59,171 nt of DNA, filler included, from Platydemus manokwari (GCA_037951405.1; 5 parts of 5 records of this genome joined end to end with filler, not necessarily neighbours in it), one strand, 5' to 3'; positions 12,276 through 18,030 are shown, counted from the whole stretch's first letter. Made by a program: numbers and translations. Notes: a model not told the origin generated them from the sequence alone.

Positions 12276-14483
12276 ATGATTACACTGGAGGACGAAATGG
12301 TAGGACTAATATTAAAATAAATATTGATTTTAAAGTTTTAACCAAATTTAGGAAAATAAGGTATATCTTCATTGTTGAAAAAATTGAAAAATTTTAGTTA
12401 TTGATACGTTTAAATAGATACTCGAGCTTAATACCCAATTAAGTGAAACTTCCATCAACAAAGTTGAGATTTTTAATTTCAGTCACTATTTAATAATTTT
12501 TAATAGGAAGTTTCTTCTTCAATCGCTGATTATAAAGAACGAAAACTTAAAACATCTACAGTATCAATAATATTTAACATTTATTAATTATTCTCTTATG
12601 GTATTTTTAAATTGTTCTTCAGATAGATGTCAACGAAAATTGCCATGTTCCAATAAAAGTGATTTTAATTTTTCATTTCTGCTTTTTAATTCCAATTTAT
12701 ATTGAAATCCAGGAAAATCAAAACGCCAATGATTTTGTTGGAGTCGAAGTAACATAATTTTATTTCCAATGGTAAATCTTAATAATATTTTCATTATAGA
12801 ATGATGAATCGGAAACTAGCAGAAAAATGGTAAGTTGTTTATAATATAATATTGATCTGAAATATGTTTAAAATTTAAAATAACAAATCAATTTTTATAA
12901 ATTAGTTTTCATCATTATTAATTAATTTTATTATAACGTGAATATATTTATCAAAAATTAATTTATACAAATGCATTATTGAACTATTTCTATGGTTATC
13001 TATTTAATTTCATTTCATCATCCATAGCTGGAAATAAATCTTCAGCTCCTTTAATCTGTTTCTTATTGTGAAAATTAAATCAAATCTTTCAGTGTTTATT
13101 TATCCATTTCGTTATTAATTTGATATGAAAGTGTTAAATCGTTTTTTAACGTTGTTATGAATGACTAATAAATCTATTTTTAGAACATATCCACTTGTAT
13201 TTCATTGGTTGAAAAAATGGAATTCCATTTATGGTCACTGGTTTTATTAAAATTAACATAATAAATTACCGTTAAATCATACGTCACCAAAATCTTGGAA
13301 TTTATAATTGATAGATATTTAATACTGATATTATCATTAGAATATTTAGTGTGTATCAGAAAATTTTAATATTGTTATTACAAAATTAAGGGTTGATATT
13401 GATTATTATTATATAGTATCATTATCAGATCATTGATTTCTATATTGATATTGAAATTCTGAACCAAAATAAGCATATTATTATCTTGTTATTTATTTGG
13501 TGTGTTAAATGCAGGGATTTTATTCATCGAGAATTTGAAAACCTAATTTTCACCATTCTTGTCTTTATCATGAAATATGTTTCCATTTTCTGTATTTTCT
13601 CATCAGTGGTGTTTGAAACCTCTAAAGTCCATAATTCACATTTTATCGAATACTAAACCCATGAGCTTTATTTATCACTTGTGCGTATGTTGTGAACACC
13701 ATTGGTGATCGGTTCATAATAATACATTGGTTATATTTATCATTTGTACTTTATAAGTTAACATTAAGCCATGAATTATTGTTATTTGAAACGATAATTG
13801 TTTGTTTAACTCTATTCACTATAAATAGTTATTCAAATATTTCAATGGTATCCAAATCAACTATCTATTTATGAAAACTAAATCAACGTCATGTCGCATC
13901 AACAAAATTATTCACAATTTTGTATTTAAATAGGTTTTGAAATATTAATGATATACATTTTGAAATCATTATTTAATTATCAAGTAGTTACTATTAGCTA
14001 TTATAGGAAATGAACTTTCTAAAATGAACTTCACAAGTGTTATTTTATTAATAAATAGCCCCCGGATAATATTAAAATGTAGATTTGATTAGATATAATG
14101 ATCATGAAATAATTATTGAGATTGATCATTTGTTTTTATTGAAATCAAATTATTGATTAATTAATTATTCTGTCATTATTAGAATGATTGTCTAAAACAT
14201 TAATGTCAAATATTTATAACAAAACGTGGCTGATGAGGAAATAACAAATCTATGAAATTTATGGCCATTTAAGGGAATTTCTTATCATTAATAGTGCGAT
14301 TTATCCTAAAAATCTGCATGATTTAGATAAAGAAATTCTTGATAACAAACCTGACTTGATATAAATGATATTTGAACTCAAAGATTATGTTAATCATTTA
14401 CTCAACAAATACTTTTATATTCCAATTATGTAGAATATATTCAACAAGTTTCATCCACAATCTTGTTTATTTTAAATAAAAGC

Positions 14484-14516
<33 letters not shown>

Positions 14517-16315
14517 ATGTAGTGAATCTTGTAGTGAAAGTATATTAAAATATCTCATTGAAATAATTTTGTAACACTATCCAATCTGTATATGTTTGGA
14601 GAAAAGAAAAACAATTTTTAACTCATGTCATTTACATGTAATTCTCGCATGACGGGTGCTACTTATATTTATTTACATAGCATGAATCTAGTTTTATTCT
14701 AACAACGTAGCTAACATTTACAAAAGATAGAGATAATATTAAATAAAACTAATATTACAATTAATGCTATGTTGTCTGTTTGAGATTCGTTCTACAAATT
14801 CTGAAAAGTCCATTATATCTTCAAATAATAATTAATATATTTGATTATATTTCCACTAAAATAAATAATAAATCAAATAATTTTATCGTGGCTGAGATCC
14901 CACTAAATATAAACTAGATCGATCCGTTATATATATAACATTATCATGAACATAATATTTGAATTATTGTACTAGCCAGTTTCTTGGATCAGGTTTTGTA
15001 CCAATCTTTTGATCATTACATGTATAATAGAGCTTTTCTAATTTTAAAAATATCTAACAAGGAAAAGAAAAATTAATTTTTATTTATAAATTAATTATTT
15101 CAGACATCTAAAAGACTAAATTGTGAGATATTTTGCAATAATATGTTACAATAGACTTTACTTGTCACACACAAATGAAAGTTGCATTATTAAATGAACA
15201 TTGAAAATATGAAAAAATATTCATAAAAAAAATTCTTAGATGAAAATTATTGTAAAATTATTGACTGTAAATAATTTTTACTTTGAATTGTTTCGACTTC
15301 TATTTCACTTAAAAGTTTGAATTTTCGATTTATCTATTTGACTTTTATTCAAATGTTTTGAATAATAATAATAATAATACGAGAATATTAAACTTTTAGC
15401 CCACCTATTAACTGGTTTGGCTTATTTTTGATAAAATATTACATAGCTATAACATATTAATTTACTCTAGTTCCATCAAATTTAATAATTGTTATGAATT
15501 ATTGCGCACTTTATTACCAAATGAAATTTTTATCGATTATAGCAATATTCGAGCATCTAGACCAGTGTGTGTATGTGATTGTAATAATATAAATTCATCT
15601 TTGATATGAAAATTATTTTCAAAATAAATATTTGTATTAGTTTTAAATTTATTGGTATTTTATTATATTTATAGGTTGCTGAACTGAGTCACCGAATTGA
15701 AAGAATAGGTATTTTCATTTAATTAAATGCAATGGAATATGTGCTATTGCCGTCATAAAATTATTTACAAATTATTTGCAATATTTTCTGAACAATTAAC
15801 TATAATTTCATTTTCTTGTTTTCAAAATCCAAAAATAACTTGAATGCAATCAGCATTTTTCCATTGCATTCAAGTCTATTAATTTTTGGCATCTTGTTTA
15901 TAGAAAGAAAAAATTTGACCATTAATATTCAAAATAACTTTGCGCCAATGACTTTTATTGACTCGAAAAATAATAACATTAAAAAGAGTGATGTTCGAGG
16001 TATAAGCTTTGAATTTCAGGTTTTGACCTTTCATGCAATTTTGTAGATCCAGATGGTCTTGCATATTCCAAATCTAAAGTCAATAGCAATTGTCTTTTAA
16101 ATGCCGTATGTTGTGATAAAGATGTCCAGGCTAAGTGGACAGAAATCTGTGCAGAATTCTCTATTCCCGTGACTGGAAACCCACCAACCGACGACATATA
16201 TAATTTCCTGTATGATTGTCTTAAAATTCAATTGCAAAATACTTCAATAACTCGATTTAATTTTTTAAAGCAACTGTCCAAAGTTGTTGATGTTTCACAT
16301 CTGTATCAAATTTAA
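12276..16315 (+). CDS. Micro-exon-rich gene, unknown protein (charged N-terminus, possible death-domain-like C-terminus); central exons unresolved
   Basis: 5' exons 12276-12299, 12352-12360, 12418-12462, 12507-12560, 12623-12658, 12713-12748, 12800-12829 splice in frame via GT-AG introns of 44-62 nt. Tentative 3' chain 14976-14992, 15104-15122, 15400-15414, 15543-15568, 15675-15708 leads to a stop-free terminal exon 16020-16315 (GFDLSCNF...HLYQI*). Joining the 5' and 3' blocks into one gene is inferred. Confidence 0.6.
14484..14516. repeat. Compound (TA)n(TG)n microsatellite
   Basis: Directly visible. Confidence 0.95.
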
Positions 16316-16999
16316 TATATTTATTGAATTTATTTTTATAAGAAATTATTAATCAATATGTTTGAACATAGGATGATCATTATATATTTATCCAATATTA
16401 ATATGATTTACAGATTATTCTATATATTGCTTTTGTCTTAGATTTGACTTGAGTTCGCTTCATGGCCTCATGTGTAATCCACGTTAAATTATTATCACCT
16501 TTCACCTTTATATTATATGATGTTAATAAGGACGGAAACAGTAATACGTATCAGTTTCGGTTATTAATGCATCAGAAATATTTGGTTTATCTATGGAAAA
16601 GTTATGCTGACAATAAAAATCTTTTACTGTTATCTTGATTGATCAGGAAATTACCATTGCAGCCATTAATTATTATTACGGATAAATATGATTGAGCTTA
16701 CTTATCATTATGGTATTCTAATACGTTTGGAAATTTTTCTGTTCTATTATTTGTTTAGTACTAGATCCCACCCCAAATAGAAATAATAATTAATAGAAAA
16801 TTGTTATTTAAAATCAATTCAAAAATAGACCAAAATATTTATTTCGAAATAATAAAATGTCATATTATAACCACGAGATAAGAATAACTAAACTAAAAAC
16901 GTTCTTTAATTCCATCACAAAATTTATTAAAATTTGAAAAAGCACGTCATTCATAATATTTAAATAAATTGAATTTCCAATATTATCTAACTTCCCTCT

Positions 17000-18030
17000 C
17001 CAGTAGTTTTTGAAATCTTTTTCAACTACTCAATTCTTCGACATTTTGTCTGTCCATGGAAATTAAGAAGCACTTCATATGGGCTTTAAAATTTCAAAAT
17101 TCTGTGAGAACATTTGTAACGATCTCAGTTCTTCTTTATTTTGTGCGGTTCTTCTCTAAAACTAATTCTTTAACCTTGAAAATTCAACCTCTTCAGCATC
17201 ATATTTCTTTTAATTTGTAGCCATTGATTTAATGTTTCTTTGATGATTTGGTTCATTTAATCATAATCCATCCATATTAAGACATCGTCCAAACAAAACT
17301 TCAAAAGGAGAATGTTGAATTAAGCTTTGATATGTTGGATTGATTATAAATTCTATCCGAGGTATTAATTTATCCCAAGTCAGTTTCTCTGATTCCAACG
17401 TTGTTACCGCCATGTCTCGGACTGTCTTAATCATCCTTTCGGTCAAGACATTTGCTTGGTGTTGGTATGGGGTGGTAAATTCTGGCTTTATTTCGAAACG
17501 TATTGCTAGTTCCTTCATTTCCCTTGCTCGAAGACTATGTCCCGATCGGTGAGCATTGATTATGGATTACCATACCTATAGATCTAATTATCGATGATGG
17601 ACTTGGAAATTCTTGTCTAGTCTTGTCGAATAAGTGGCACTAAGCTTACTAGATCGAACTCCGATAATCCAGTGATATTTGTGTAATAATGCCCTATCCT
17701 TTGTCTCGGCGTTACATTGGCTTCCCACACCACTTGTCCTTCAATATTCAGTATTATTATATATATATTGGGTGTGGTTCCCCATTTAGGACAAATTCTA
17801 CCTTAATATCCATAAATATTATTCGGTTCCTCAGCTCCGTGGGAGTCAGATCTATATCCCGGACGTATGATATTTGTGTGTTATATCGGGTATATCGGGT
17901 TTCTTATATTTCGCCTGTTGTTGCTGTTTCCACTCACTATATGTTTTGATAGTACATGGAATTTTTTCGTCCTCGCTCTCTTCACTATCTGAATAGATCA
18001 CAAGACGTTCCATGCTATCCCAACAATATC
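17000..18030 (-). mobile_element. Gypsy/Ty3-type LTR retrotransposon remnant: integrase core plus an upstream short ORF
   Basis: ORF 17261-17518 FTTPYQHQANVLTERMIKTVRDM...WDKLIPRIEFIIN...SPFEVLFGR is the rve integrase C-terminal half (TTPYHPQxNGxxER; SPFxxxFGR). Upstream 18013-17852 encodes 53 aa (MERLVIYSDSEESEDEK...), copy 2 of the dispersed ORF. Confidence 0.85.

Follow-up and report, generated by a model that had tools for sequence, protein, structure and literature searches.

Can a string of very short exons, each a multiple of three nucleotides long, be taken as a gene, and if so does its symmetry say anything about how the transcript is spliced? These questions are raised by a run of seven small open pieces at 12276–12829 on the plus strand of the window, by which we mean the whole stretch of DNA that was analysed, 59,171 nucleotides including filler. 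All positions are counted from its first letter. A sequence-only reading of the window had proposed that the run is a hidden gene made of symmetric micro-exons, resembling the micro-exon genes (MEGs) of schistosomes, and that it encodes an intracellular protein that is varied by combinatorial splicing. Here the run is examined for its layout, its coding character, its continuation downstream and its likely product, and the comparison with MEGs is then taken up.

Layout of the micro-exon run

The seven pieces are 24, 9, 45, 54, 36, 36 and 30 nt long and form a single continuous open frame. The gaps separating them are 52, 57, 44, 62, 54 and 51 nt long, and all are bounded by GT and AG. The piece lengths, translations, borders and intron lengths that had been given for the run all agree with the sequence. 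The six internal junctions, and also the junction after exon 7, are in phase 0. The surrounding DNA is very AT-rich (22–36% GC per 500 nt; the contig is about 25% GC). The ORF list holds no plus-strand ORF of at least 45 amino acids spanning 12276–12829, and the run was thus indeed passed over by the ORF track, as the earlier reading had noted.

The coding part of exon 1 (12276–12299) consists of an ATG in an A-rich context and seven further codons, with a codon score (described below) of +2.7 bits over its eight codons. A stop codon lies at 12222–12224, the first in-frame ATG is that at 12276, and there is no AG between the two; this ATG is therefore the start codon if exon 1 is used. Intron 1 (12300–12351, 52 nt, GT..AG, phase 0) has a GC content of 0.17 and a negative codon score in all frames. 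Exon 2 (12352–12360) is only 9 nt long, encodes ENK and scores +0.9 bit. It is the least certain of the seven pieces, and skipping it produces an in-frame intron of 118 nt.

Intron 2 (12361–12417, 57 nt) leads to exon 3 (12418–12462, 45 nt), which has an alternative in-frame acceptor at 12427. Intron 3 (12463–12506, 44 nt) begins with the donor GTTGAG; GTT donors are known in real introns of the assembly. Then follow exon 4 (12507–12560, 54 nt, +3.8 bits), intron 4 (12561–12622, 62 nt) and exon 5 (12623–12658, 36 nt), the last with an alternative in-frame donor at 12629. After intron 5 (12659–12712, 54 nt) come exon 6 (12713–12748, 36 nt, +5.0 bits), intron 6 (12749–12799, 51 nt) and exon 7 (12800–12829, 30 nt, +3.6 bits). 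In order from exon 1, the donors of the seven exons are GTAGGA, GTATAT, GTTGAG, GTATCA, GTGATT, GTAACA and GTAAGT, of which the last, following exon 7, is the best. The frame is still open at the end of exon 7, and a downstream exon is therefore required. No internal duplication was found among the exons, and a search of the assembly found no second copy of the locus.

Introns of the assembly

In order to judge these features against genuine introns, a reference set of 29 junctions was used, drawn from the assembly's CCT, kinase and myosin genes and placed by HMM coordinates and continuity of the frame. The lengths of the reference introns are bimodal, with a short mode at 40–56 nt and a long class running from about 0.1 to 1.5 kb or more (L011–L018 and L051–L067); the myosin genes have long introns of 0.7–1.5 kb. 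The donors are GTA or GTT without a strong G at position +5 (GTTATA, GTTGAT, GTATTT and GTAATA are examples), and the acceptors are YAG. The introns of the micro-exon run, at 44–62 nt and with weak donors, fit the short-intron class of the assembly. It follows from the high degeneracy of the 29 real donors and acceptors that splice sites cannot discriminate exons from the AT-rich background.

The phase of the reference junctions is also informative. Phase 0 is found in 19 of the 29, and on this basis seven consecutive phase-0 junctions have a probability of 0.66^7, or about 5%. A run of seven is mildly unusual only, and given the phase-0 excess the symmetry of the exons needs no special explanation.

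It should be added that the assembly is a mixture. It holds four full-length COX1 genes, on contigs C1514745, C1389203 and C1344449 (L005–L007) and on C1440324. The three that were compared have pairwise DNA identities of 71–80% and arthropod-like motifs, and they use the invertebrate mitochondrial code (AAA is Lys in TGIKVFSW, and ATA is Met). Such divergent COX1 genes imply that the assembly, of 911 Mb in 2 million contigs, mixes several animals, at least three. The CCT1 gene (L009, G000:C1456310:508-2085) and many kinase domains (L021–L048) are intron-free over their full length, while other CCT genes and the myosin genes, on similarly AT-rich contigs, have many introns. The contrast might be explained by retrogenes or by the mixture of organisms. 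The best named relatives of the CCT1 gene lie at much the same distance (72–75% identity) and come from cestodes, horseshoe crabs, a brachiopod, spiders and insects, which makes its owner a protostome with no close relative among them.

Coding character of the seven pieces

In the 13.5-kb contig we looked for chains of pieces that are free of stops, in phase 0 and set apart by GT..AG gaps of 40–70 nt. On geometry alone, chains of seven or eight pieces are present elsewhere on the same contig; of 300 sequences simulated from it with a third-order Markov model, 100 contained at least one seven-piece chain. The bare geometry is thus not rare. In DNA of about 25% GC, chains of open phase-0 pieces with GT-AG borders are common by chance, and a test of codon usage is needed before such a chain is called a gene.

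As training set for a codon log-odds model we took 33 conserved stretches that code for CCT and kinase domains in the same assembly (GC 0.30–0.44, GC3 0.17–0.44); the non-coding DNA of the contig, conditioned on open frames, served as background. On this model the seven pieces total +15.0 bits over 78 codons. The resulting 0.19 bit per codon is comparable to the mean of the training sequences, 0.21 ± 0.10. The top-scoring seven-piece chain on the plus strand of the contig is the micro-exon locus itself, at +16.6 bits; there is only one other real seven-piece chain, which lies on the minus strand and has a score of −5.7 bits. The maximum of the simulations was 5.9 bits (n = 300), so the locus lies above all 300, with the proviso that real DNA is heterogeneous and the simulated sequences are not, so that the null may underestimate what arises by chance. 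The six gaps have a negative codon score in all three frames. The exons also differ from the introns in base composition, with a GC content of 0.329 against 0.188 (Fisher p = 2e-4).

A dynamic-programming search that allowed any phase and introns of 38–130 nt still returned chains that are phase 0 throughout and use the same sites. The differences were limited to the two in-frame alternatives noted above, the acceptor at 12427 and the donor at 12629. From the codon score and the contrast in GC we are reasonably confident that the seven pieces are real exons, and the proposal of a hidden plus-strand gene of small symmetric exons is in our view probably right.

Continuation downstream

Where, then, does the open frame lead? 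The earlier reading had pointed to the region 16020–16315, and it is here that a much larger, exon-like ORF is found (16020–16315, plus strand, 296 nt). It encodes a conserved C-terminal domain and ends with a TAA stop at 16313–16315. This exon has no start of its own: there is a stop in its frame at 16010–16012 and no ATG, and it takes one nucleotide from the preceding exon. The position of the upstream stop forces the acceptor to 16019|16020 or just downstream.

The terminal exon needs a phase-1 junction, and exon 7 ends in phase 0. Some 40 single exons of length 3n+1 could bridge the two, and the one with the best codon score is 15675–15708 on the plus strand, which has a good, pyrimidine-rich acceptor and a length of 34 nt (11 codons and one nucleotide); this score is only +3.6 bits. 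With this putative exon 8 the join is in frame. It would be preceded by a long intron (12830–15674, plus strand, 2845 nt, phase 0), whose sequence is single-copy in the genome, and followed by an intron of 311 nt (15709–16019, plus strand, phase 1). The nine exons then read as one frame of 187 codons ending at the TAA at 16313–16315, and the predicted continuation into 16020–16315 is borne out to this extent. Linking exon 7 to the terminal exon through 15675–15708 is the simplest model, and we infer the splicing from it. Between 12830 and 16019 the codon model found no other plus-strand segment that is coding-like at 5 bits or more.

One public sequencing run matches the locus (97% of words). 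It is genomic, and its contigs are collinear with 11800–16600 through exons and introns alike. The joints listed for this run are spurious and of low complexity, and none falls at a predicted junction.

Relatives of the terminal exon

Of 1.84 billion representative proteins searched in full with an HMMER profile, one proved to be a true relative of the terminal exon, namely P0001 (UniParc UPI00060AE0E0, 262 aa, E 1.8e-21). The profile match spans the last 90 residues of P0001, which are 45–47% identical to the terminal exon and share the position of the stop. A word search with the terminal exon was blank, and one with P0001 returned P0001 only. Among the other matches in the profile search, P0002 and P0004–P0009 are Bacteroidota T9SS repeat proteins, and were rejected as resting on a short 'C..Y.APDG' motif multiplied by the repeats; P0003 was rejected as a low-complexity repeat.

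A further copy of the domain is encoded in the assembly itself, on the minus strand of a 247-bp contig with 40% GC (L002, G000:C490485, 1-247). In the search of the 911-Mb assembly it is about 41–51% identical to the terminal exon, and its stop is at the same position. This copy could be paralogous, or it could be the orthologue of a different animal in the mixture. Neither the terminal exon nor P0001 nor L002 matches any Pfam family at E values up to 10. NCBIfam gave no match, the ESM Atlas no usable match, and a scan of metagenome contigs no relative. If the gene model is right, we have an unannotated gene and a small undescribed family of three sequences, with no Pfam family and possibly with a highly divergent death-fold domain, as discussed below.

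Residues C24, C30, C43 and H93 of the terminal exon are invariant in the sequences that cover them. These conserved cysteines and histidine may form a structural metal site or disulfides.

The N-terminal region

The region encoded by the micro-exons is acidic and polar, with a net charge of −8. Its most hydrophobic stretch, measured as the top Kyte–Doolittle 9-mer mean, reaches only 0.43, in keeping with the earlier claim that there is no signal peptide. When the micro-exon peptides were aligned exon by exon with the N-terminus of P0001, no score rose above those of shuffled sequences. No similarity to the micro-exon peptides was found elsewhere in the genome, and a search of the genome with residues 1–170 of P0001 gave no match.

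The two regions are nevertheless alike in composition. In the first 170 residues of P0001 and in the micro-exon peptides, respectively, the fractions are 0.12 and 0.15 for E, 0.10 and 0.12 for N, 0.10 and 0.09 for K, and 0.09 and 0.10 for S. Residues 1–132 of P0001 have an AlphaFold pLDDT of about 30 and are predicted to be disordered; the N-terminal region encoded by the micro-exons is probably disordered also. In this family, then, a polar N-terminal arm that evolves fast is joined to a C-terminal domain that is conserved.

One gene, two genes or chance

Taking these results together, we consider that the run and the terminal exon belong to a single unannotated gene on the plus strand, of about nine exons and about 187 codons, and we put the probability of this at roughly 0.6. 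There are two other ways to read the same DNA. The pieces could be non-coding, AT-rich DNA that falls into a pattern by chance, the true upstream exons of the terminal exon being elsewhere or undetected. It is the case that chains of seven or eight pieces arise without coding, both on the real contig and in simulations, that the splice signals of the locus are weak, and that no homologue backs the seven exons. The codon score, however, is higher than in any of the simulations or in any of the contig's other chains, and chance does not readily account for the difference in GC between exons and introns. Moreover, the chain opens with an ATG in an A-rich context, closes at the best of its donors and joins a conserved exon in frame. 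We therefore regard a chance pattern as unlikely.

Alternatively, the micro-exon run could be real and the terminal exon part of another transcript, with the further exons of each lying in the 3.2-kb interval or off the contig. The link between the two parts is after all a 34-nt exon with a score of 3.6 bits, reached across a gap of 2.8 kb, and P0001 has about 170 residues ahead of its domain where the model has 89. Against this, the plus strand of the interval 12830–16019 offers no other segment that looks coding, long introns are normal in this assembly, and the two parts, each incomplete alone, are in frame when joined. Two separate genes appear slightly less likely even than a chance pattern, and the single nine-exon gene remains the reading that we prefer.

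Predicted structure of the C-terminal domain

Structures were predicted for the terminal exon and for P0001, both models being built from the same three-sequence alignment. The terminal-exon model has five helices, with a pLDDT of 61. In the full-length AF2 model of P0001, the C-terminal domain (residues 188–261) has six helices and a pLDDT of 74–91. The models were then compared with 48,161 PDB representatives using VIA-align, for which a Z score of 8 was taken as the line of caution for helical bundles. For both models, almost all of the best 50 rows are death domains (DD), DED, CARD or PYD. The P0001 domain aligns best with the DD of FADD (Z 7.9, rmsd 2.7 Å over 78 residues), followed by those of ankyrin-G (7.6) and RIPK1 (7.5). 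The terminal-exon model gives Z scores of 6.0 for the RIPK1 DD and 5.8 for the FADD DD. All of these values, for both models, are below the line of caution.

With Foldseek neither model had a significant match, and the Pfam families Death, DED, CARD and PYRIN do not match the terminal exon, P0001 or L002. A death fold for the helical domain of about 75 residues is therefore best described as a lead only: it is consistent and extends over the whole domain, and it is unproven. A match in the PDB to the RWD of KNL1/CASC5 (E 0.04–0.1) was rejected, being borderline and setting a β-rich region of KNL1 against a domain predicted to be helical; nor does the fold search recover it.

There are points of resemblance to small adaptors of the FADD type, in that the protein is short, ends in a helical domain of about 80 residues, and has an N-terminal part that is predicted to be unstructured and a predicted intracellular location. 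The best structural alignments of the predicted domain are likewise with the death domains of FADD, ankyrin-G and RIPK1. IMD of Drosophila is another small death-fold adaptor with a C-terminal death domain. In contrast to established death domains, the domain described here has no match to Pfam Death, DED or CARD and reaches Z scores of only 6–8, with homology unproven, and its conserved C30, C43 and H93 are not a death-domain hallmark.

On the basis of these predictions we suggest the following for the single gene. Its seven small phase-0 exons, separated by minimal introns of 44–62 nt, would encode an acidic, polar N-terminal region, probably disordered and without a signal peptide. Beyond a 2.8-kb intron and the probable exon of 34 nt, the 296-nt terminal exon would supply a helical domain that is conserved, about 75 residues long and nearest by structure prediction to the death-fold superfamily (DD, DED, CARD). 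If the domain does adopt a death fold, it would be a homotypic interaction module, and the protein may be a small intracellular adaptor.

Comparison with micro-exon genes

The MEGs of schistosomes, in the accounts drawn on here (DeMarco et al., 2010, as reported in PMC8293314 and bioRxiv 10.1101/2023.06.21.545858), have most of their coding sequence in symmetric exons of at most 36 nt, with introns of 0.1–5 kb. As described in the same sources (PMC8293314; bioRxiv 10.1101/2023.06.21.545858), they have signal peptides and secreted products, they form expanded families, and their alternative splicing by exon skipping has been demonstrated. To the extent that these accounts cover them, schistosome MEGs share several features with the present locus: consecutive very short exons with lengths in multiples of three, a small product, and a tendency to be overlooked by gene finders and ORF lists.

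The differences are greater. In our gene model the micro-exons make up 234 of 561 coding nucleotides, or 42% of the coding sequence, and a single 296-nt exon makes up about half. Five of the seven small exons are of 36 nt or less, the others being of 45 and 54 nt. Set against the schistosome genes as these sources present them, the locus has a minority of its coding sequence in micro-exons, introns of 44–62 nt, no signal peptide, a single copy and a conserved globular C-terminal domain. Profile and word searches found no kinship to a known MEG family, the micro-exon peptides being too short to serve as queries on their own.

A broader definition was given by Olson et al. (2020; PMC7653826), in which micro-exons are shorter than 70 nt and divisible by three, and a structural MEG has seven exons or more, half or more of them micro-exons, with four or more of these in a row. 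It is a definition by geometry only, and the genomes on which it was used, those of tapeworms and flukes, were annotated and backed by RNA-seq (PMC7653826). The nine-exon model has all of these properties, known here from sequence alone: it contains seven consecutive exons of 9–54 nt, each divisible by three, or six if exon 1 is discounted because of its UTR. The label MEG-like used in the earlier reading can therefore be kept in the structural sense of Olson et al. (2020; PMC7653826) and not in the schistosome sense, given the share of coding sequence, the introns and the missing signal peptide; the locus is not a schistosome-type MEG, and has MEG geometry only.

This leaves the second half of that label, namely that a family of in-frame isoforms of an intracellular protein would result from skipping the symmetric micro-exons in many different ways. 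The junctions that follow exons 1 to 7 are all in phase 0, so the loss of any internal exon of the run would leave the frame intact, and the geometry is that of a structural MEG (Olson et al., 2020; PMC7653826). The alternative in-frame sites at 12427 and 12629 point the same way, and the encoded region, if disordered as predicted, would probably tolerate deletions. Yet symmetry is fairly expected in a genome in which 19 of 29 introns are in phase 0, where seven in succession have a chance of about 5%. The introns are of the size class of constitutive introns in conserved genes of this assembly, unlike the 0.1–5 kb of schistosome MEGs as given in the sources above, and the locus shows no signal peptide, tandem gene family or exon duplication.

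Minimal introns are recognised by intron definition and are usually spliced constitutively. Combinatorial splicing of the run is in our opinion improbable. More doubtful still is the full proposal that, outside the flatworms, a death-fold-like adaptor diversifies a disordered N-terminal arm by combinatorially skipping six symmetric micro-exons. If true, it would place a MEG-style mechanism in intracellular signalling and not in secreted proteins at the host interface. Most likely, the all-phase-0 layout results from the phase-0 excess of the genome together with intron-dense coding of a disordered region, and is not a dedicated mechanism for diversity. The locus is best seen as an ordinary gene whose exons are unusually small. 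If the model is right, MEG-like geometry can arise in an ordinary intracellular gene, here in a genome with many minimal introns and phase-0 junctions, and caution is advisable before combinatorial splicing is inferred from symmetry alone.

Sequences within and around the probable gene

An Rfam search of the contig gave no match. Within the putative long intron there is a coding-like segment on the minus strand at 13008–13052 (12 bits over 15 codons), which may have arisen by chance or may belong to an antisense gene as a small exon, and a (TA)n(TG)n microsatellite at 14473–14528. The gene is flanked by retroelement-like ORF fragments on the minus strand, at 10970–11404 and 17261–18013. The two fragments have a motif of 24 aa in common, in which they are 54% identical (E 2e-7). 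The segment 17369–17554 (minus strand) has a weak match to the integrase core (rve_3, E 0.003).
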